From Pelomyxa schiedti (lineage: Eukaryota > Protista > Evosea), in NCBI GenBank assembly GCA_020536535.1, contig JAHLWZ010000686.1, positions 1 through 34,128 of the forward strand: DNA of 34,128 bases. Direction: 5' to 3'. Shown here piece by piece: positions 2,761-33,486 of the stretch (position 1 is its first letter; each line of letters starts with the position of its first letter). Made by a program: the position numbers and the translations under genes. A model generated the notes under the pieces. That model was given only the letters and a program-made list of their open reading frames with translations, was not told the origin of the DNA and ran no database searches.

Positions 2761-2863
2761 ATCCCCCACACCCAGCCAACCCAGACGCCCAGTCACCACC
2801 AGTTATGTAAAAAAACTAAAATAAACAATCATTTGCCAGGCACTTGGATTGATCATCGCAGCA

Positions 2864-3777
2864 ATGGGCAAGAAGAAGAGCAAGGGCACACTAGCCAGCG
2901 ACACACCCTCCTCGTCCAAAGCAAAAAAGAGCCACCAGCCGCAGCAGGGTGGGGGGCACGGGGAGGCAGCGACGGACGACGAGAGGGTGATCACGGGGCT
3001 GGGGTGCTACAACACGCCGCGGGTGGTGCAGGCCCTGGACGATCTGGTGCAGGACAGCCTGACTGGTGGGCCAGGGGCAGGAGGGGGGATGGGGTGGAGG
3101 GAGGACAACGGGGCGACCGACGCGTGCCTGGGGCTGGGCGCCGTGTCGGTGTTGCTGGCCGTGGCCAGCCACTACTACCCAGCAAAGTACCCCGACATAG
3201 TCCCTGCTCTCATATTCTTTGTGGCCGCGTGTGTCCCCTGCCTCAAGAAATTGATATTGCTGTAAACATTATCGTTATGTTGCTGGACATATGTGTATTG
3301 ATTTCTTTATTTATTTATTTATTATACAGAGACCTCCCCCATACAACTTGCCTTGTCTCATTGTTTTAGGTATCTTGTGTGCGTTGGGCTGGTGTACCTT
3401 ATATCGCGGTGTTACATAGGTGACGCTCTCCTTGTTTTCAAGGTATTGCTTCTATTTGGAACTGTGGATGGGTGAATTGATTGAATCTAACAACTTGCAG
3501 GGAGTAGGACCTCTGAAAAAGGTACCCTTGTAGTTACCGTACAGTTCATTCTCCCATTTAACATCACCAACAGGCAGCCGCTGTTTCTACTTCCATGTCA
3601 AACTATAGCCCCGATTACACAATAGAGTTCTATTACACAAGCCAACCGAAAAAACGATACGCACAAACGTGCAGCATCACAGACTGGGTCGATGAATCAG
3701 GCACCCTCCACAAAATCCCCTTCAAAAAATTCGTGCAGAAATGTGCTGCAGAATTCCTCGCGGAAAAAGAGAACTGA
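2864..3777 (+). CDS. SPCS2: Signal peptidase complex subunit 2 (SPC25 family); 4 exons
   Basis: VVQALDD motif, two hydrophobic segments (LGLGAVSVLLAVASHYYP; ALIFFVAAYLVCVGLVYLI), and a C-terminal YSPDYTIEF...SITDWVDESGTL region typical of SPC25. Three GT-AG introns keep the frame. Confidence 0.88.
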
Positions 3778-5450: not shown

Positions 5451-7796
5451 TCAGAAGCCCTCATCATCAGCGTGGGCAGATTCAGTGTGGAACATGACTG
5501 CGTCAGGGGATGGGAACGCCGCGTCGCACAGGGGGCACGTGTACACCACTCCCCGGCTCGTGCCCCCACCACTACTAGATGTTGTTGATGTTGATGATTT
5601 GGTGGCTGCTGCTGAAGGTGGTGGTGGGAGCCTGGTTGTGGATGACGATGAGGCACAGCTGCTGGTGTTGTTGGTTGTTGATGCTGATGATGATGATGGC
5701 GGGGGCCTGGACCCGCACGTGTCTATGTGGTGTTCTACTTCTGATATGTAGAGTATGCGGCCACAGAGGGGGCACTCCACCAGGTCTTGGTGCCCCCCCG
5801 CTTCCTCATCTTCTATTCCACTGAAGTCCCATTCTGGGGGTTGTTCTGCGTTATTGTTCCTGGGGTTACGGGGCATGTCATCCACACCGTCGAATATATC
5901 CCTGGTGCGGTTCCGGTTCCGCATGGAATCCGGGTCACATGTAAGGCCATGTGCTTGGTTGAAAGTGTCCATGTACCGCATGTGGTCCTGCAGCATTCTC
6001 ATGGTTGCCGTGGATTTTTTGGGGGGAGGGGGCGGCGTTGCCAATCCCTCAAGGCAACCACTTTCAATGTGCCATGGCATGTCTGTGTAGGATTAGAAAA
6101 AGCGGAGGGAGAATGTAATGGATTATGGAATACGTTGCAACAGCACTGACTGATGACAAAGTTCACAGTTGGTAGTTTTTGATCCACAGTACTTGGTGTG
6201 GTTTGGTAGATCTTTCACCAGAACCTTTTTTTTCAATGGTTATTCATACCATGGTTAATATTTGGTATTTACAGAGATATTGCAGAAAGGGCAAAGGTCA
6301 GGCCGCAGAGGACACTCGGTGGCTGAATGGGAACTTAGTTGGCAACTTTCTACTTGTTGACCGCACTTGCATGTAACCTAGGTGAAGCAGTTAACACAAG
6401 TTCCGCATATTCGGTATTACAGAATTGTGAGTTAGAGCGTGCGCAATCTCATCCACTTTCTTCACAATGGCACCACATTTCTCACATAGAGTGTTCAATC
6501 TCTCGCATCTCATTTTGTGCAATTCGAATTGCGGTTTTGGTACCGCAGAATGACTGGGTGATAGTAAATTCCAAATTAAATCTCACAATGGTTCTATTCA
6601 CACCAAAAAGGGCACGGTACTGCATCTTGTAGATCAGAAGCTTCCAACACTTGTTTATTTCCCTCTCCAATGAAGTCTTGATTAGAGGTAAGGTTCAGAA
6701 CAAGCCCAAATATTATTACTTGGGTGCATTTCTTCTTCTTTGGTGGTGGAGTCTTCGCAAGGCTGACTTATACTTGGAGTGGTATTTTCTAGTAACACAT
6801 TTAAGTCTGTGTCAACAACAACTACAGCCTTCGCTCCAGTTGGCTTCAATCCAACAACATTGAGCTCAAAAGGGTTGGATGAATCAGATGACTCACTGGT
6901 GCTTGTCGTATTGCATATACAAGTGATTGTTGTGCCAAGAGTGAGGGTTGTGAATGAACTTAGAATGTGCTCAAGTCTACCTAAATTTTAGAAAGACTCA
7001 CAACTTATGAAGAACGGCATACTCTGCTTTCACATTTCCTATTTTGGAAAAATTCTCATCCATTGGCCTGAAAGTAACTTCTGTGCCTGTTGGTAATACC
7101 TTGTGCCTGAATTCGACCATTTCCGATTCAGAGATGCAAAGAGTTTTCATCAACTGCATAGGTTGAGTAAGGCAGCAACACATTACAGGTACCCATGAAG
7201 GAAGAAGCACGTGGTCAGGGGGAGAAGTAAATTCAAGAACCCCACAATGCACAGAATGAGTTCGATCTATGCTGGTCATCTCAAACACATACGGGAACGC
7301 AATCCGATGGGAAGCTGTGGAAGTGGTCAACAAGCGAACAAAGCAGAAGTATGGCAAACCTAGCAGAGCGAGTATCTGCGGTGGCATTATCACTGCGTGA
7401 CACAGGACAAGTTATTCATTTTGCAACAACAAATTCCACAAACGGCAAACAGTAGCACACCCTTATCAGAATATTCAAATGCCACAGTGACTCCCGCGAA
7501 CCCATACGAGTTGGCCATGAGCTCGAAATCCAGTGGTCCCTCGTCCTCGTCGCTGCTCTCATCCTCGCCCCCCTCCCCTTATATTATCAGTAAGATAACC
7601 CCTCCACACATGTCAAGATATGAGATTGTGCACTCGGCACAGTGGCGCACGACAAGCCACGTAGCATACCACGCGCAGCCAACTCCCTGTCCAGCATTAT
7701 CGACTGTGCCATAAGTCTGTCCGCGTGTGCTCGCTCCGCGTCCAGCTTCGCCTCCCACTCCGCCGCTGTCATGCTCCACGACGAACGCCCCGCCAT
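5451..7796 (-). CDS. UFD1-domain protein with C-terminal TRAF-type and UBZ/C2H2 zinc fingers; about 11 exons
   Basis: UFD1 motifs SDKVIMPPQIL, HCGVLEFTSP, LLPSWLMKTL, LPTGTEVTFRP, LEHILSSFTTLTLG, VVDTDLNV. Followed by CPFC...HKMRC, CEKC...HALTH, CKCGQ...HSATECPLRPDLCPFC, HTKYCGSKTTNCELC, CPLC...HHIDTC and CPLC...HTESAH. This is a UFD1-like paralog architecture rather than canonical UFD1. Confidence 0.88.
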
Positions 7797-7858: not shown

Positions 7859-9172
7859 ATGGGAGGGTTGAAGCCGTTGAAAACGACCGCGTCCACCAAC
7901 GGTACCACAACAACCAATACTAGTGCGAGTGGCACTACTTTGACTACTACGTCGTCTTCGCAACAGCAACCATTCGCGGCACCACCAGGGACCATCCCCC
8001 CACCGTCAGCTGCTGACCCCGGCACCTCCGCCAGAAACGTGGACATGCCCAAGTCCGTGGTGTGCGCGTCGTGTGGGCACCTCATCCTCCTCGGTGTCTC
8101 AATCGCATCCCCTGACGTGATCCTAATCGAGGGAATATCGTTCAGCATCCCTGTCGAGTGCCCCACGTGCGCCCGTGTCACAAGGGCATGTCACTTTGTT
8201 CTGCTCTATTGGCTCGTTGTATGCAAAGACTGACATATACACAGATCGAACACGTTGGGGTGAGCGACGTGAGGACAGCGCGCGTTGCGTATGACGCACC
8301 CAAGGTCAAAGTGTTCGAAGTTACTTCTCGTGTTGAGGCACACCCCAAAGCAGACCTATCGGTGACGGACCCTGGCTGGAAAGTAATCGGAGGGGCAGCC
8401 GCTGTATTTTTCTCCGCTTCACAGCCGGGTTCGCTGTTGACCAAGTCGGCTCCACTGCTTTCCGGGAACAGGTATGTGTACCGCTATCGGATACGAAGTT
8501 ACTTACTCTGAAACATACAAACTAGAGTCATTGGTTGGTCCGGGGCGGCCAAGGACCATGACTACAGCTGTCCACTTTCGATTACTGTGTATGCTTTTGC
8601 AATTCATGATCCCGACGATGTTTGGGACGTTATGTGTTGGAATTCTTCTTCTGCCAGAACAAGTCGCCCCTCCGCTACCGGTTTTTTCCCTTGACCAATC
8701 TTACTCTGACACTTCTGCAGTCTCTGTTGGGCCAGGGTACACTCTCACTGGCGGAGGTGCAGAGGTCCACTGGGAAATAGGCAACCTACTCACGAGTTGC
8801 TGTCCCTCTGGCGATGGTTCTTGGTCAGCATCAGCCAAAGACCACAATCACCATGACCCCTCAACCCTCACAGTGTATGCAATTGGTGTGGCACCAAAGC
8901 GAGGACAGCCGCCTCTCCGCATCAAAATTCAACAAGCCGAAGGCATGTGCGATGCTGCCAATCCAGGCAATAACGGGTGGAAGGCGGGCCGTGTTGTGCA
9001 AAGTGAAGGAGGAGTTGTCATTGGTGGTGGTGCTCAAGTTAATTACCAGGGACCCGGCTGCATGCTCTATTGCCTCAGGCCTATGCAGCATGGCTTTGAA
9101 GCTCGGGCCAAGGACCACGGTGTTGCTGATCACACCAGTGCCATCACTGTGTTTTGCATTTCTCTGCTCTGA
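7859..9172 (+). CDS. Uncharacterised protein, paralog A: Thr/Ser/Pro-rich N-terminus + CxxC-x(n)-CxxC zinc ribbon + three 'GGGA...KDH' repeats; 4 exons
   Basis: Introns at 8186-8244 (GC-AG), ~8472-8525 and ~8681-8720 give one continuous frame. Exon structure and sequence are conserved with the adjacent paralog, with synonymous-biased differences. Confidence 0.85.
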
Positions 9173-9241
9173 AACAAATAATCAATTCATCGTTCTGGTC
9201 TTTTTCCCAGTAAATTGGATTTGGCTTTTCAACAAACAAGG

Positions 9242-10613
9242 ATGGGGCGCCAGAAGCCGATAGCTCCTAGTGGTTCCGCGACCACAACGAACAGCACAAG
9301 CGCTGCATCAACTGCTTCTACTACTACTGCTTCGCCCCCGCAACAGCATCAGCAACCGTTCGCTGCGCCACCAGGGGCAATGCCACCAAACGGCGGCACC
9401 GCCAGCAACGTGGACATGCCCAAGGCCGTGGAGTGCGCGTCGTGTGGGCACCTCATCCGCCTCGGTGTCTCAATCGCATCCCCTGACAAGGTCCTGGTCG
9501 AGGGAATATCGTTCAGCGTCCCTGTCGAGTGTCCCACGTGCTCCCGCGTAACGAAGGTTCTCCCGCAAGTCACCGAGTCGCAAAAACCAAAGTTGGTAAT
9601 TGACTGTGCACACAGATTGAACACGTTGGAGTGAAGGACGTGAGGACAGCCCCCCGGGTTGCGCATGATGAGGCACCCAAGGTCAGAGTGTTTGAGGTTA
9701 CGTCGGGTGTGGAGGCACACCCGTCGGCTGACCTGCCAGTCACGGAGCCCGGCTGGAAAGTCATTGGCGGGGCAGCCGCTGTATTCTTTGCCCCACCACA
9801 ACCGGGTTCGTTGTTGACCAAGTCGGCTCCACTCCTTGAGGGTGACAGGTATATATATATCTCACATCCCAACACCAAGCAGCATACACTCACCCGCCAC
9901 AAAATACAAACAAGCACAACCAATTTATTTTCTCTGAAACAAACAAACAACAAACTAGAGTCATTGGTTGGTCCGGAGCGGCCAAGGACCATGACTACAG
10001 TTGCCCACTTTCAATTACTGTGTATGCTTTTGCAATTCATGATCCCGACGATATGTGGGATGTTATGTGTTGGGAAACCTCATCTGAAACATCGAACCGT
10101 CCCTCCGAATCCGGTATTTCCCCAACCACTCTTTCTATTCTCTACACTTACAATTCTGCAGTCTCTGTTGGGCCAGGGTACACTCTCACTGGCGGAGGTG
10201 CAGAGGTCCACTGGGAAATAGGCAACCTTCTCACGAGTTGTTACCCCTCTGGCGATGGTTCTTGGTCAGCATCATCCAAAGCTCACGTTCACCATGACCC
10301 CTCAACCCTCACAGTGTATGCGGTTGGTGTGGCACCAAAGCGAGGACAGCCACCTCTCCGCATCAAAATCCAGCAAGTTTCAAGCAACAGCGATGCTGCC
10401 AATCCCAGCTGCATCGGGTGGAAGGCAGCCCGCGCAATGCAATGTGAAGGGGGAGTTGTCATTGGTGGTGGTGCTCAAGTTAATTATTCAGGACCCGGCT
10501 GTATGTTGTACTGTCTCAGGCCACTCTCGAACGGCTTTGAAGGTCGTGCCAAGGATCATGGTGTTGTTGACTCCACCAGTTCCATCAATGTGTTTTGCAT
10601 TTCTATGCTCTGA
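9242..10613 (+). CDS. Uncharacterised protein, paralog B (tandem duplicate of 7859-9172); 4 exons
   Basis: Same architecture and intron positions (9557-9615, ~9849-9958, 10114-10161). Contains CASCGH...ECPTC and ends SSINVFCISML*. Confidence 0.85.
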
Positions 10614-10675: not shown

Positions 10676-11737
10676 TTATGACCTGCGTGTTGGGGAAGTG
10701 GTGTTGGTGGATGCTGAGGCAGAAGAAGTTGCAGGGGTTGCTGGTTGAGTTGGGGGATTTCTGGGCAGTTGTCTATTCACCATTGCCAGAGAGGCCTCTA
10801 CAGTCCGTCTCACACGGGCTGTGTATTCACCTCGATTGTATCTGTACAGTTTCTGGTTTTTGTAGTTAGATGTAGTTTAGCACTCTAAAATAATATATAT
10901 ATATATCAATTACCGCGGCATCTAAATTGGCAGGACTTTCTATATTTGGTTCTGTACTTGAAAGTGAATGAAAATTGAGGGTTGGTGAGAGACATGGCGC
11001 ACCTGAAAGCATAGAGATAACTGATACTAAAATCTTTTCGATAGATTGAACCGGTGTCCAGCGTTCCACACTCGATTCGTAGTGATTTGGGTCTTCCCCT
11101 GGTGGTGTGATAAGGGAGCAATACATGTTGGGTAAAGATATACCTGGAGGATGTAGTATTGATATACAAACTTCACCAGACGGGAATACTGCAAGGAAAA
11201 ACAAATTAACATTAGGTACTCCCGGCGTAAATAAGGATTACTATTTGGGTGGAACATTGGGCACTGAAACTTCCTAAATGGGATGAGCACATAGAATAGA
11301 AACAAGGGCCTATTACATTTTAGGCGGACTCAGTGGATAGTCAGAGGGAAACGTGAGTGTTGCAGTGAATGCCCCTCCACTGTAATCCGTGTCTGGCGGC
11401 CCACTAATCCGTTATTACATAGAATGATAAAGCGAAAGTGGAACAAGCAAAGTACATTATTACAGCCTGCCAAAGGAACATGTTGGAGTCGTTCACAGGA
11501 GCCGCTGCTGCCCCAGGAGGTGGGTCTGCAAGTATCCCTGTGTGCCACTATTATGGGAAAAATCTAAAGAAGGAACCCCACGTACTCTTGTATTCCACTT
11601 GTAGCCGTTTAATCGCCAACCTACAAGGAAACAAATAGAGAAACATGAGTGAGACTTCATAAACCCATAATACACTGCCACAAGCTCCACCAAGCCCAAA
11701 TTAGGTACGACACTCACGCAGCATCTCGTCGCATCAT
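10676..11737 (-). CDS. UBC7: Ubiquitin-conjugating enzyme E2 of the UBC7/UBE2G family; about 9 exons
   Basis: [33 protein letters not shown], active site [19 protein letters not shown] with the family-specific acidic loop [30 protein letters not shown], and [13 protein letters not shown]. Confidence 0.95.
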
Positions 11738-11797: not shown

Positions 11798-14700
11798 ATG
11801 TCGGCTGGCGCCTCGTCCGACACCAACGAGGAGGAGGTGATACTCTCTTACATCGAGAGCAACCCCCCGCCTCCCCTCGACAATGGCCCCCAGGCACCAC
11901 CTGCCACGCCAACGGAAACAGCGAGGGACCCGGCTCACGATTATGGGTACGAGGNNNNNNNNNNNNNNNNNNNNNNNNNNNNNNNNNNNNNNNNNNNNNN
12001 NNNNNNNNNNNNNNNNNNNNNNNNNNNNNNNNNNNNNNNNNNNNNNNNNNNNNNGAGGTGATACTCTCTTACATCGAGAGCAACCCCCCGCCTCCCCTCG
12101 ACAATGGCCCCCAGGCACCACCTGCCACGCCAACGGAAACAGCGAGGGACCCGGCTCACGATTATGGGTACGAGGGGGAGCTAACCAACGACTACCGCGG
12201 AGGCATCACGGGGAGTGGCGATGACCCATACTACGGCTACACTGACAGCAGCATCCTCGAGTACGACCAGCAAGTGGTGCCGTCGAGTTTCGATGGCAGC
12301 TCTGATCACCAAAGCGAGGCCGTACCCGCTGCCATTGTGGGTTCCTCCTCGGCGACGGATAACCCTGACGGGCTTCATCAGGCTGCGACTACCTCGAATG
12401 GTCCTCATAAAAGTTCCAGTTGCGCACATGTATCACAGAATGGTGCACCACAATGTGGATCCCCTGCTACTCGTGCACTTCCACAACCACCGGTCAGCAA
12501 ATCCGGCAGCGAATGGCATCAAGCAGCGCATAGAGATGGCGCCCCGCGAGAGGGGGGGCGGGTCCAGGACCGGCTCCAATCTTTGCACGCAACGCAGCCG
12601 CAACAGCAACAGGGGCTGCGTGTTTCCGCCGTTGAAAGCGGTGCGAGACCCCTGCCCAGGCCGCCTATGCAAAGTACTAGTACGGTGCAGTGCTCTCAGC
12701 CAACTAGTGCGAAGCCTCGACCATTGCCAGTACCTAAAACTCTAACACAGTCAACACAGTCACAAGTCCAACCTACCATTAATCCCGGGCCCTTGCCAAA
12801 GCCAAAACTTGGAGCTGCGGAAGTGCTCAGCACCGTTCATTCAAAACCTGCCTCGACGCCAACGCCTGCTGCCAATATTTGCAGCACTTCATCTGTACGG
12901 CCGTCTCTAGTTCCTGTCCCCGCTGCCACCACTCAGAACAAAAAAATCTCTCTCTCGGTCTCTGCCCCTCTCAAAGTGCTCCCTCCAGAAAATCCAATAC
13001 CAAAAGCATACTCCTCACCAGATTCACCCTCGCGCCCGAATATAGAGGCATCACAACTTGCTCAATTGGCTCTTATTGCCAGATCTGCTGCTTCTAAAAA
13101 CGGGCAGTCAACGGAAGTACAAGGGCATTCGTTGCCTATTAAAGGGTCATCACCCCCACCTGCAGCCTCTGCAGAAGTGCCACCAGATAAAACAAGCCCA
13201 TCCACTGATGATCTTGATTCTAACCCGTCAGCACTGGTATTTTCATCTCTCCTTGCACAAGTTCGAGCTGCTTTATAGGTTTTTTCTAGTGTATTTAAGA
13301 AAGCATCCCTTCCCAGTTGGGAGGATCAAACTCGGCTTCTTCGACAACTGGCACACTATACAACAGATCAGGTTTGAAGACACAGAGTAGAAACATAAAT
13401 ACTCACAACTTCTCAAGGACGAATACAATAGAAAAGCGTCGGAAATACAAAAAATGGTGCAGTTGTATACTATAATATTAACCTTCACAATCAACTTTCA
13501 CTCATTCTCTCCAAAGGATGAGATGCGAAAAATGTTGGAAGACAAAGAACTTCTGTTTGCCGCTCGCAACATTGCTAAACTTGATGAAATAATCAAGTCG
13601 GCTAGCAGGGGACCCACCACAGTCTCCACTTCAGGGGCACCTCTTACATCACAAATCATCCCTGAGGGTCAGAAGTATCACACAGAAATTTCTTTTGATC
13701 AGCTGAAAGTCGGAGACTTAGTCGGACGGGGAGCTGCTGGCAAAGTTTACAAGTATAGTTGGTTCCACACAGTTTTTTTTTTTTTTTTGATTTCTGTTTG
13801 ACACTCTACAGGGGTGTTTATGAGGGCCAAGAAGTGGCAATTAAACACTATTCTGAAGATAATGTACAATTCAACCTGAAAGATTTTAGAAAGGAAATTG
13901 CCATTATGAGGTCATTTGTTGTGTATTTTTTTTGTTCTTACATTCCCACAGCGTTCTAGATCATGAGAATCTTATACGTTGTATCGGTGCTTGCACCGCG
14001 GATCCACAGCACCTATATATTGTCACACCTCTGTTAAAATTCAGGTTATTTCTAATCTCCAGTGTTAAAAGCCTAACTTTGCAAACAAGTCTCGCATCAT
14101 TTCTAGCACAAAGTAACCCACTCCTTCCCTCTTTTACAAGCAAAATTGGGGATTCACACTGTTAGATGAGATTGATTTGGTTACTTGCCTTGATATCGCT
14201 ATGGGTGTAACTTCTGGGATGTGTTTCTTGCATGCATACCACCTTATTCACCGGGATCTTAAAACGTAATATCTTTACTCGTTTTCATTTTACCCACATT
14301 GATGTTAGTCAAAATATTCTGGTTTGCTTTTCTTCCAATTCCATTTACTCTCTAATAAAGCCAAATCCTGAAAGCTTACAGATACGTTGCAAGTAAAGAT
14401 AATTGGTATTACAAATCTATTTAAAAACTGCGAGAATAACCTGCAACGCAATTTAGATTTTGGTACCTCCAGAATCATAGATACAGCGTCCATGATGACT
14501 ACAAATATTGGGACAGGTTTTCCCCTTTCTTATTTCCCTCTCTTACTTTGTCCTTAGTACAGTACATGGCCCCTGAACTTTTCGGTTTCCTACAACCACC
14601 TTTGAAGGTCTTTTACCTTTTCACACAGAAAATAAAGAGTATACTGAAAAAGCAGATGTGTACGCTTTTGGAATTGGTACGATGTACTATATGAAGTGTC

Positions 14701-16796
14701 CTCACTTTTTACAGTGCTGTGGGAGATTGCATCTGGAGAGCAACCGTACTCTGATAAACCATCTTGGGCCATTCCCGGTTTGTCTTTTTTTACCTTGGAT
14801 CTGGATTGATGTGAAACTAGTGGCAGTAAGTAAAGGAGAACGGCCAAATATATCAAAGACAATGAACTCGGAACTTGCCAAACTTATCAAGTTGAGATCT
14901 TACGTAGAATCAATCTCATACAATATGCAGGGCATGCTGGTCTCTTCTCCCAGCCAAGAGGCCATCATTTACGGATATACGTGCTTCATTGAGAAATATT
15001 TTGCAGGATGTTCGAGACCAACCTATGCTATTAATGGTACACTCTAACTTTCCTGGTAGTTCTTCATACTTACTTTCAATCACAGCCTGCATTTGGGAGA
15101 TGGGAAGTTACTGTATGTAGTATATGTCCTTCCGCCTGTAAACAATAAACAGCAAAGACCTATACAAGGAGACTTGGCCAAAAATTTGTCCAATTACGCA
15201 GCCAGTTCAGAGAAGTGGACGGTACACATTCTCTTGCATTAAAAATATTCCTAACTGCCACAGTTTTCCACTGAAGTCCTTTCTTTTGACTTCAGTAATT
15301 CTAGCACCAATCACCCTGAGACACAGCAATTTGACATCTTCAATAATACGAACTCATCCTTTAAGTACAAGATCGATAAATACACAGATTGTGATCTGAT
15401 TCTGGCCTTTACAAAGGGCTCGGGAACTATCAAACCAGTCAGCCCTCTTTCTCCTGTTTTCTTCTGACGTTTTGCAGCATACACGAAAGATTATTGATGT
15501 GAAAGTGACCGTAAAAATCAAAACCACCAAGTCACTTCGAATTCCAGTCTCCCTTGGAACATCAAAAGACTTCATTGATATTATTATTCGCTGTGATGCT
15601 GGTGTTTTTGGAGTTACGCCATCACTTCTCCCCCAAGGAAAAGAAGATGGTAATTCTGTCTTGTGTCTATGACTCTTCATTCCTCTTTGTATAGACTTGA
15701 AGGTCCCACAGATTTTGGTTGATTTGAAGGCCGCACTAATAAATAATCAAGGTTTACAGAAGGTACTGACCTCTCCAATTCGGGTTCTTCTTTATTTGAT
15801 GCAGGTAAACATTTTCCTGCAAGCTGGTGATGCTGCTGAATTAAAACGCCTCCAGGAGCTTGCCAACCGAGGGGAATTTTCCCCAAAGCTCCCACATAAT
15901 CCTCATGTGATTGCCAACTTGATCAAGGTAAAAAAAAAAACTAATCGAAAGGTTCCCACATACAACCAGGTCTGGTTCAGAACCTTACCACAAGGCTTGA
16001 TGAACAGCATCAGTCCTAATGCGCTTATGGACTCAGTTACAGTACTACAGTGTATGACCGCAATACAACAGTTGGGGCCATACAACATGGTTCTTTTTGA
16101 GTGGCTCCTTCGCTTACTAGTCCTGGTTTGCTCCAACCCCGCTAACAAAACAACCCCGAAGTCCATATGTATGAATCCCCATTCCCCCGCATTCAATTTA
16201 ACTACCGCTCACATAACAACAGCCATCACCATTGCTCCGAATTTATTCTTTGCTCATGACTTAGAGACCACCAAGCTTTCCGGCAAGTGTTCTGACATGA
16301 TTCAAACACTAATACAGGCCCGCATTGCNNNNNNNNNNNNNNNNNNNNNNNNNNNNNNNNNNNNNNNNNNNNNNNNNNNNNNNNNNNNNNNNNNNNNNNN
16401 NNNNNNNNNNNNNNNNNNNNNNNNNNNNCTCACATAACAACAGCCATCACCATTGCTCCGAATTTATTCTTTGCTCATGACTTAGAGACCACCAAGCTTT
16501 CCGGCAAGTGTTCTGACATGATTCAAACACTAATACAGGCCCGCATTGCTGCACCAGCAACCTCAAACAACCAATCCAGCACATCAACAAGCAGTAGCAC
16601 CGGGGCACCAACAAACACAACAACACCCTCAAGCAGCACAGGGGCACCCACATCCACAAGAACAAACAGCACTGGAGCTCCATCACCATCACCATCATCC
16701 ACCTGCCTCAGTACTGGTTCATCACCATCGCCATCGCCATCACCAAGGGTCATTTCTGCAAACAGTAGTGCCAGTACTAGTACTGGAAGTAACTAG
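11798..16796 (+). CDS. TKL-group protein kinase fused to an Ig-like (ASH/MSP-like) beta domain and a RhoGAP-like domain; long Pro-rich N-terminus; about 20 introns; spans two assembly gaps
   Basis: Kinase motifs are intact: VGRGAAGKVY, VAIK, HRDLKTQNIL, DFGTSR, GTVQYMAPE, DVYAFG, CW...KRP. The frame continues through FSTEVLSFDF...FDIFNNTNSSFKYKI into GVFGV...VPQILVDLK...NPHVIANLIKVWFRTLPQGL...NKTTPKSIAITIAPNLF. Confidence 0.88.
11955..12054. other. Scaffold gap (100 N) flanked by an identical 121-bp duplication
   Basis: 11834-11954 is repeated at 12055-12175. Confidence 0.95.
16329..16428. other. Scaffold gap (100 N) flanked by an identical 121-bp duplication
   Basis: 16208-16328 is repeated at 16429-16549. 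Confidence 0.95.
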
Positions 16797-31400: not shown

Positions 31401-33486
31401 ACTGTACCTCAGTGAAGGATCCCCAGCACTACCAGATATCTGTAGGCATCTTCAAGGCCTTGACTGTCCAACTTTTACCTTTGATGGATTCTTTGTTTGA
31501 TGACAAAGAAAAAGAAAAAGATCCAAAAATCCCTGCCATAATGAACACGCTTCTCCCACCAATAACTGCTCTTGTACACTACAAAGGGTATGTTGCGTCT
31601 TCATTGGGAAGTAAGGTAACATGGTCTAAAGACCTGGAAGCCCTCCCAATGTTGAGGCGGCAGTCAAATTTGTATCAAGTATCTGCCAATACAACTGGGC
31701 AGCAAGGCATTGGAAAAATCTTGTGAATGAGGTCTTCAATGACAATGACTTTTTTGCAGTGGAACCACAGCATCTTTTGCACTGGATGATCCCTGTCAAT
31801 ACACTTGTCGCCCCTGTTTTTACAGAGTTTCTCAGTTATTTTCCCGTCACTTCTTCATTGTTTCCTCACTTGTACACAGAATCACTGATGAAAGTGTTGC
31901 AACCCCCAACTCTACTTACAGCAAGAGAACAGGATATGATCAATAAATCCCGTTGGCTACGGCGGCTTGCATTTGTGCTATTGTCTGCCCCACTTGATCA
32001 TTATTCCAAATATAAAAATCAGATCCGGGAGCAACTTGTTTCTGTTTTAAGGGTAAGCCGGACTTACTTTCACTCTTCTAACACTTATATAGATTCCAAA
32101 TTACACCATGGTTCATTGTCAGGTAACTTATCTGGTTCGGCAGTAACAGTAAACCTTTCCAAGGTGTTCCACTGCCTGCGGGTGATGTTTATCAAATTCT
32201 CTGGAACTCAAGTACAGTACATGTGGCCATTAGCATTGTCGGAGTTAATTGGGACTTTGAGTCGCCAATCCGCTGTGGACGTTGATGCAGAACTAACATT
32301 GGCGGCTTGTAAATTACTTGATTTACTTTTAGTTATGCCAGATTCTGTTTTCATGCAGTATGTACTTACTTTTAGTCTATTTTCTAAACATACGTTTGTA
32401 GACATGAATGGGTTTTCTTGTATGACTGTTTGCACAGTAAGCTCCCTCGTGGAGCCTTTGTACCTCTCATAGAGAGGATGTATACTTATATGCCTGAGAC
32501 CCAAAAGGTGAGAATAGATTTCCGCGTTATATTTTGCCAACTCTGCACAGTCTCCGGTACTGAATTTCGCTCAGCTCGCTGGAACTCGACAGCCTCTACT
32601 TTCATCAGTAACCACACCATTGAATCCACATCCCCTCCCACCCACAACTCAAAACATAGCCAACACACGCCTCCTGCTCCATGACTTCTCTCATGCGGCC
32701 AAGATGAATCAACTTTTCTGCTTCCCCCTTGATGCAGAATATGTGAGCAGATCACTCACAACTGAGCTCTCAACCCTGGAGCAACCAGGTGCCAGCATGT
32801 CTGTTAGCGTACCCGGCCAAGGCAAAATAGGGCAACCACTACAACCAAGCCCTAGTGCTACAACTTGTGCCACCGCAACACCTGTACCATCATCATCCAC
32901 CCCATCCCTCACACCCCCAGTATCACATCCCACAATCGCTGTTCCAAGGACACCCCCACCACCTCACACCGACACAAGTTGCTCACCTCCACCATCTCCA
33001 GCCAAAGTACCTTCCCCAAATCCAATTGTAAGCACAAGCACAAGCACAACAACCATATGTACTACAACTACAGCACCAGTATCACCTCCACCTTCATCAC
33101 CATCACCATCCCCTTCACTGTCACCATCACTTTCACCCACACTACAACCAAGTTCGGCAGTTGATATCACATGCCTTCCAGAGCCGGACTTCTCATCTCT
33201 TGTTCTGCAGGACCCACCCTCACCACCACACAGCCCATCCCCACTAAACACAGATGAGGAAGCCATAATTCCCACACCTCTGAGAGAAGCACCCACCCTC
33301 ACAGAGGAACCAACAACCACAGAACAGCCAAACACCAGGCAAACAACAGAAACACCTGCACATACCACTGATGAGCCACACCCTGATCCTGCAACAACAC
33401 AACCAACAATGGCTGGCACAACGGCTGCTGTAACCATAGTGGCAGCAGCAGAAACCCAACACCCCGATAACAATGACGTGGTATAG
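25438..33486 (+). CDS. DOP1: Dopey/DOP1 family endosome-Golgi trafficking protein; more than 35 introns; Pro/Thr-rich C-terminal extension
   Basis: Dopey_N motifs FDKAAEWADLIKYL, RRVNQCLNHLLPGGVHSKALEVY, ILVQRETLELI and RREVSLNRRLYNWLLG. C-terminal motifs WLRRLAFVLLS, QYMWPLALSEL and AACKLLDLLL. The start MADELCAVE is inferred from ATG 25438 plus an intron. Confidence 0.95.

Follow-up and report, generated by a model that had tools for sequence, protein, structure and literature searches.

Tandem genes of the amoeba Pelomyxa schiedti carry an undescribed, mostly bacterial three-repeat module with the predicted fold of the PCSK9 C-terminal domain

What do two tandem genes of the amoeba Pelomyxa schiedti encode, where did their repeat domain come from and what might it bind? 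Genes A (Pelo_8740) and B (Pelo_8741) lie on contig JAHLWZ010000686.1 of the 52-Mb assembly GCA_020536535.1; 'the window' below means this whole contig, 34,128 nt long. A preliminary description had assigned to each protein a Thr/Ser leader, a QQPFAAPPG motif, a four-cysteine zinc ribbon and three repeats, and all these parts are present in both. The pair are expressed carriers of an undescribed family with a known fold.

The repeats of A and B are about 80 aa long, with GGGA, GxLL, P, W/F and KDH in register across all three. A family profile, the alignment of which includes gene B, matches A at E = 1e-80 and the second paralog at E = 4e-79, over the full 260 aa; the three-repeat signal in the sequence is far beyond chance. 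The AlphaFold2 model of the repeat domain, based on a 126-sequence alignment, has a predicted local distance difference test score (pLDDT) of 93.6 and a predicted template-modelling score (pTM) of 0.91, and contains 18 strands, six per repeat. Among 48,161 representative PDB chains, the PCSK9 C-terminal domain matches it best, at Z 22.2, and the next fold reaches Z 6.3; the best PCSK9 entry (Z 22.6, root-mean-square deviation (RMSD) 2.6 Å over 199 residues) is matched along the whole CHRD, residues 453-680, and Foldseek compares the two at E = 9e-6. The model and the structure searches bear out the earlier proposal of a pseudo-trimeric β domain of the PCSK9 C-terminal or resistin type. At the sequence level, a single-repeat profile places the PCSK9 domain, in register, at the top of 177,635 PDB sequences, with a non-significant E value of 0.7; exon 4 and the three-repeat profile found no matches in PDB sequences. 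Structural look-alikes in the ESM Atlas include choice-of-anchor A proteins, mollusc GH10 enzymes with PCSK9_C1 and CBM4_9 domains, and PCSK9 itself. Common ancestry of the module and the PCSK9 C-terminal domain is likely.

Among 50%-identity representatives, a search with exon 4 retrieved 847 proteins at E ≤ 0.001; of these, 416 also pass 1e-10. The consensus of the repeat is S-x4-HP-x3-VxVPxGY-x2-GGGA-x-V-x-W-x-G-x-GNLLTASYP-x5-W-x-A-x2-KDH-x4-P-x2-IT-x-YAIG. No family model in Pfam, NCBIfam or PHROGs matches the three-repeat module, so the claim that it belongs to no named family holds. A motif scan of bacterial genomes gave 47 loci, which spread over 9 phyla and are numerous in Lysobacterales and Myxococcales; with the exon 4 search, it supports the suggested kinship with uncharacterised bacterial proteins. 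An ESM Atlas structural cluster (template-modelling (TM) score 0.90) has 374 members, 95% bacterial, and bacterial clusters of the same shape score 0.85-0.90. Since most relatives from Logan, JGI and ENA carry no taxon label, the wording 'mostly bacterial' rests on the labelled members and the Atlas. Four plasmids bear a copy of the module. Phage records and viral contigs contain no relatives, viral structure matches being weak, and no close relative was found in metagenome contigs. Matches to Pfam VacA2 (6 of 126 relatives at E ≤ 0.01, the Pelomyxa protein not among them) were set aside as hits on short Gly/Asn-rich strands.

Among 292 full-domain relatives, 109 stand alone and lack a leader, another 46 carry a short one, and the other 137 are fusions; the leaderless Pelomyxa form is therefore normal for the family. 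In a second count, the module was C-terminal in 123 of 144 fusions. Its partners include MACPF (a cluster of 19), thiol cytolysin, Cry Endotoxin_N, M4, S8 and trypsin domains, as well as TIR, FHA, kinase, PASTA, SH3, VWD, RHS and HEAT. In P0046, P0078, P0094 and P0141, the module is joined to MACPF, thiol-cytolysin and Cry Endotoxin_N domains, and its position there is the usual place of receptor-binding domains. The commonest partner, found in 33 proteins (P0013, P0005, L019 and 30 more), is an unannotated N-terminal domain of about 215 aa with two invariant cysteines and no Pfam or PDB match. TIR is joined to the module in the filasterean Pigoraptor chileana (P0144) and in the unlabelled relative P0026, a domain order that resembles a receptor-like sensor. 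The module is a mobile accessory domain, used alone or on pore-formers, proteases and signalling domains.

Coevolution within the module was analysed in 929 repeats (effective number 568), with residues given in repeat numbering. Lys60 (92%), Asp61 (82%) and His62 (93%) are strongly conserved, and an upstream His15 is found in 66%. Couplings 21-54, 19-54 and 17-58 follow the antiparallel pairing of strands 2 and 5; Ala14 and His15 stand opposite Asp61, with coupling ranks 8 and 10 of 2775, His15-Asp61 being the tenth. Other couplings join Leu43 to His62, Asn42 to Pro67/Ala68, Pro16 to Asn42 and Trp37 to Asp66. The strand order of the model, taken with the couplings, suggests that in each module His-Pro, Trp, Asn and KDH are carried by three loops at a single end, where they would form a conserved patch of polar and aromatic residues. 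Where His and Asp are both lost, it is mostly from one and the same repeat (odds ratio 12, versus 3.0-3.6 between repeats, uncorrected for relatedness). The full His and KDH set occurs in 59% of weighted repeats; all three His-Pro and KDH sets are complete in 37 of 125 relatives, incomplete sets being common.

The three Pelomyxa sites are unequal, because the coupled His and KDH are complete in repeat 1 only. The preliminary description's three equivalent sites are not supported: in repeat 2 the upstream His gives way to Arg, in repeat 3 to Asn, and the Asp of B repeat 2 is gone as well. Its statement that KDH recurs in each repeat was made for A, where it is correct; it does not extend to B repeat 2, which has KAH. 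Arg is the commonest substitute for the upstream His in the family. Repeat 1 keeps His and KDH and has lost the conserved Trp and Asn. The Pelomyxa repeat domain contains eight cysteines, versus a family median of two per whole domain.

Genes A and B are separated by 69 bases, and their window models are identical to the deposited GenBank proteins. The window models were searched exon by exon and, after splicing, served for translation, paralog comparison, profile scoring and the first tree; the full-domain alignment, the predicted fold and the regional search were based on GenBank records P0004 and P0163. The splicing presumed in the preliminary description is seen in RNA contigs from four runs of one single-cell sample, in which five of the six introns are removed, every one of A together with introns 1 and 2 of B; for gene B, these contigs do not reach intron 3 or exon 4. 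Introns of the GC-AG class, to which the first of gene A belongs (Table 1), make up 1.59% of those in the P. schiedti genome (PMC8887013), and the supplements of that paper mention neither gene. Profile searches of the assembly found the two tandem genes and no further copies. After the leader, the paralogs are 82% identical, with a synonymous divergence (dS) of 0.38 and a ratio of nonsynonymous to synonymous divergence (dN/dS) of 0.28 overall; the ratio is lowest in repeat 1 (0.11), the most constrained part. The pair is under purifying selection. Along the gene, dS is about 0.2 in the zinc ribbon (window 8033-8290) and repeat 2 (8623-8890), versus 0.5-0.6 in repeats 1 and 3, from small counts, and this unevenness may reflect partial gene conversion. 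RNA contigs of two runs show A>G at window 8147, which changes Ile97 to Val, the residue found in paralog B, and, in gene B, RNA contigs lack 3 bases of the Thr-rich leader (window 9318); both differences are probably alleles.

Table 1. Coordinates of the gene pair, its parts and its neighbours in the window
Feature	Position	Strand	Details
Gene A, Pelo_8740 (4 exons, 386 aa)	7859-9172	+	exons 7859-8185, 8245-8471, 8526-8680, 8721-9172
Gene A introns	8186-8244 (GC-AG), 8472-8525, 8681-8720	+	gene model, RNA contigs
A leader, aa 1-58	7859-8032	+	Thr/Ser/Pro-rich, low complexity; no signal peptide
A QQPFAAPPG motif	7964-7990	+	identical in both paralogs
A putative zinc ribbon, CxxC-x27-CxxC	8063-8170	+	sequence pattern
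A repeat 1, aa 129-212	8302-8607	+	split by intron 2; full His142 and KDH set; KDH from 8551
A repeat 2, aa 218-293	8623-8890	+	split by intron 3; Arg for upstream His; KDH retained, from 8837
A repeat 3, aa 304-386	8921-9169	+	Asn for upstream His; six-residue insertion; KDH retained, from 9110
Gene B, Pelo_8741, KAH3759442.1 (4 exons, 384 aa)	9242-10613	+	exons 9242-9556, 9616-9848, 9959-10113, 10162-10613
Gene B introns	9557-9615, 9849-9958, 10114-10161	+	gene model; first two in RNA contigs
B QQPFAAPPG motif	9350-9376	+	identical in both paralogs
B putative zinc ribbon, CxxC-x27-CxxC	9434-9541	+	sequence pattern
B repeat 1	9679-10040	+	full His140 and KDH set; KDH from 9984
B repeat 2	10056-10331	+	Arg for upstream His, KAH for KDH (from 10278); both coupled residues gone
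B repeat 3	10362-10610	+	Asn for upstream His; KDH retained, from 10551
UFD1 gene	6998-7393	-
E2 ubiquitin-conjugating gene	10866-11204	-	spliced
WD40	1470-1925
Signal peptidase SPC25	2849-3265
C2H2-like zinc finger	5451-6080
DOP1 C-terminal domain	31723-32472
Pro/Ser-rich frame, 505 codons	11761-13278		no Pfam match
N gaps, 100 bases each	11955-12054, 16329-16428

Hydropathy indicates no signal peptide in A or B, in support of the probable cytosolic location proposed earlier; the sole hydrophobic stretch of A (aa 75-93, KD19 1.94) lies between the two CxxC pairs. All four ribbon cysteines are retained in both paralogs. Pfam Zn_ribbon_4 matches the putative ribbon at E = 0.04, short of the cut-off; searches with this segment matched the two paralogs only, ESM Atlas look-alikes being weak, and none of the module relatives that were read carries a zinc ribbon. 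The DNA pattern of QQPFAAPPG matches the genome at the A and B sites only (n = 2; a reversed-pattern control also gave 2). The UFD1 and E2 genes that flank the pair are probably there by coincidence. Elsewhere in the window, the WD40, SPC25, zinc-finger and DOP1 genes are ordinary eukaryotic genes; of the two N gaps, the first falls within the Pro/Ser-rich frame and the second follows a RhoGAP domain.

How did the module reach Pelomyxa? Transfer from bacteria at an unspecified date, followed by intron gain, addition of the N-terminus and tandem duplication, is the history that we regard as probable; the patchy eukaryotic distribution of the module and its differing domain architectures fit transfer better. 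Eukaryotic relatives occur in Planoprotostelium fungivorum (stand-alone, with two introns), in Pigoraptor chileana (the TIR fusion) and in the ostracod Darwinula stevensoni (intron-bearing), the member of which, CAG0886551.1 (L018:3001-6451), forms a well-supported clade with the unlabelled Logan proteins P0048, P0093 and P0109. Horizontal acquisition, as put forward in the preliminary description, is not established: other eukaryotes carry the module and a tree that groups them is not rejected. No tree nests Pelomyxa, which sits on a long branch, in any bacterial clade, and this speaks against transfer. Vertical descent from an early amoebozoan or eukaryotic ancestor, with widespread loss, is the somewhat unlikely alternative. 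It can draw on these homologues and on the modules of PCSK9 and of molluscs in animals; on quick trees that place Pelomyxa and Planoprotostelium weakly together, with values of 82-84 in the Shimodaira-Hasegawa-like approximate likelihood ratio test (SH-aLRT) and a clade of the two at 84 in one of them; and on approximately unbiased (AU) tests, which reject neither an amoebozoan clade (p 0.41) nor a grouping in which four unlabelled neighbours join the five eukaryotic rows (p 0.32). However, Pelomyxa and Planoprotostelium share no intron position, and the careful tree, in which the bootstrap is not settled, keeps eukaryotes apart and does not join these two. Moreover, each eukaryote shows another architecture, and the family is patchy in eukaryotes but diverse in bacteria, where it is also found on plasmids.

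As to function, a leaderless cytosolic adaptor that binds surfaces, probably through glycans, is a reading for and against which we see about equal weight. As they have no leader, A and B are expected to work in the cytosol. Their C-terminal part of about 260 residues is predicted to be a single-chain pseudo-trimer of six-stranded β-sandwich modules. On pore-formers and secreted proteases, the module stands where lectin and membrane-binding domains are placed, which suggests a targeting domain. The conserved patch of Trp, Asn, His, Lys and Asp is typical of sugar sites and points to a glycan; judged by the partner domains and the residue make-up, there is an even chance that the module binds a surface glycan or a glycolipid head group. 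Once it is bound, the zinc ribbon and the proline motif might recruit host proteins, which is a guess; natural targets would be bacteria, also endosymbionts, that are exposed in the cytosol or inside damaged vacuoles. Dictyostelium discoidins, cytosolic lectins that bind bacterial glycolipids after vacuole damage, are a precedent (bioRxiv 10.64898/2026.06.18.733164), and prokaryotes reside in the cytosol of P. schiedti (PMC8887013). Cytosolic sensing of bacterial glycans is a candidate role for the pair.

Several points weigh against the adaptor reading. A ligand is known for no family member, and the 19 bacterial loci inspected show no recurring partner and no conserved gene neighbourhood. 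The single-sequence fold of full-length A has a pLDDT of 30, so that its ribbon model is unreliable. H-type lectins (discoidin I/II, SLL-2), which are trimeric six-stranded β-sandwiches, match at Z 2.0-2.6 with no Pfam match and are functional analogues at most. The CHRD of PCSK9, the closest solved fold, binds proteins, namely MHC-I and CAP1 (PMC9113161). A His/Asp/His set fits a metal site equally well.

If that set were a transition-metal site in each module, the Pelomyxa proteins would be metal binders or metal/pH sensors, with the site intact in repeat 1 and the Cys4 ribbon in addition. The covariation of the upstream His with Asp within a repeat, the conservation of the KDH His and the loss of the upstream His alongside KAH, as in B repeat 2, agree with a metal site, which we nevertheless consider unlikely: KDH persists in many repeats without the upstream His, the His-His pair is uncoupled (rank 319) and attachment to toxins and proteases suits a targeting role better than metal handling, while a metal might also belong to a sugar site. 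It is likewise improbable that the module binds proteins, as in PCSK9, and that the Pelomyxa proteins are adaptors with no microbe-sensing role. The near-invariant K-D-H patch, kept across 9 phyla and unrelated partners, suggests a small shared ligand instead, and repeat 1 is the most constrained part of the Pelomyxa genes. Binding of MHC-I, CAP1 and annexin A2 by the CHRD, which has the same fold, the fusions to TIR, FHA, kinase and HEAT domains, and the alteration of two of the three patches in Pelomyxa together with its gained cysteines are nonetheless what a protein scaffold would lead one to expect. Contamination or a mis-assembled duplicate has next to no probability, even though the assembly derives from single cells and the host harbours prokaryotic endosymbionts (PMC8887013), as spliceosomal introns are removed in RNA, the eukaryotic UFD1 and E2 flanks mark the pair as nuclear DNA, and the paralogs have diverged (dS above) and are both transcribed.

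Whatever the ligand, the strongest finding concerns the bacterial family and how it connects to PCSK9; no literature on a bacterial family of PCSK9 C-terminal type, or on the GH10 link, was found in a search outside which most subscription journals lay. In the reviews consulted, resistin is the one named structural relative of the PCSK9 C-terminal domain, and the working partner of that domain is still debated. The large, mostly bacterial family, which has the same predicted fold, a conserved patch and little reliance on disulfides, offers simple proteins in which the ancestral ligand of the fold can be tested. Through it, a C-terminal domain that had gone unannotated is recognised on many MACPF, cytolysin, Cry-like and protease proteins of bacteria. 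The pair in Pelomyxa represents a lineage-specific reuse of the module, which would be weightier if the pair does recognise bacteria in an amoeba that houses prokaryotes.

Among known systems, the β-tripod of GNIP1Aa (Vps62-like) is a three-fold β targeting domain of a bacterial MACPF toxin; identity with it was rejected (Z 2.9, no profile match, its D-x-G-S/T-G-x3-D motif outside the family consensus). The APC-β domain of apicomplexan perforins (TgPLP1, PvPLP1) is a three-repeat β domain that resembles the module in size and ends a MACPF protein at its C-terminus (Z 5.2-6.3), and bacterial members of the module family are joined to MACPF in the same manner; however, the RMSD is about 6 Å, the packing differs and there is no sequence similarity. 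A single module of resistin/RELM superposes on one repeat (Z 3.7-3.8, RMSD 2.8-2.9 Å), but resistin is a secreted, disulfide-bonded homotrimer of separate chains without a sequence match. The PCSK9 CHRD is closest, as its three tandem six-stranded modules in one chain with pseudo-three-fold packing correspond to the predicted Pelomyxa domain. The two differ in that each PCSK9 module has six cysteines and three disulfides (PMC9113161), a pattern absent in Pelomyxa, so the Pelomyxa proteins are not members of Pfam PCSK9_C, although they are of that fold. Identity is 11-12%; no Pelomyxa match to PCSK9_C1, C2 or C3 exceeds the gathering score, and one of 126 relatives reaches E = 0.003. The GGGA, GNLLT and KDH motifs and the zinc ribbon set the Pelomyxa proteins apart from PCSK9, where an I9 prodomain and a proteinase K-type S8 protease come before the domain; the Pelomyxa proteins have neither a protease domain nor a signal peptide. 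The PCSK9 order of I9, S8 and three modules recurs in secreted subtilases of Lysobacterales (L047:1546-3783, L055:570-2591, L056:1588-3717; aqualysin/proteinase K-type S8). The same clade joins the module to M4 and trypsin too, so the S8 fusion may be convergent. On a wider and rather doubtful proposal, the PCSK9 C-terminal/resistin fold would have its prokaryotic, disulfide-free stem in this family, a mobile domain that directs bacterial pore-formers and proteases to glycans or membranes. Pelomyxa would have joined it to a zinc ribbon and made of it a cytosolic sensor for the surfaces of bacteria, perhaps those of its own endosymbionts.

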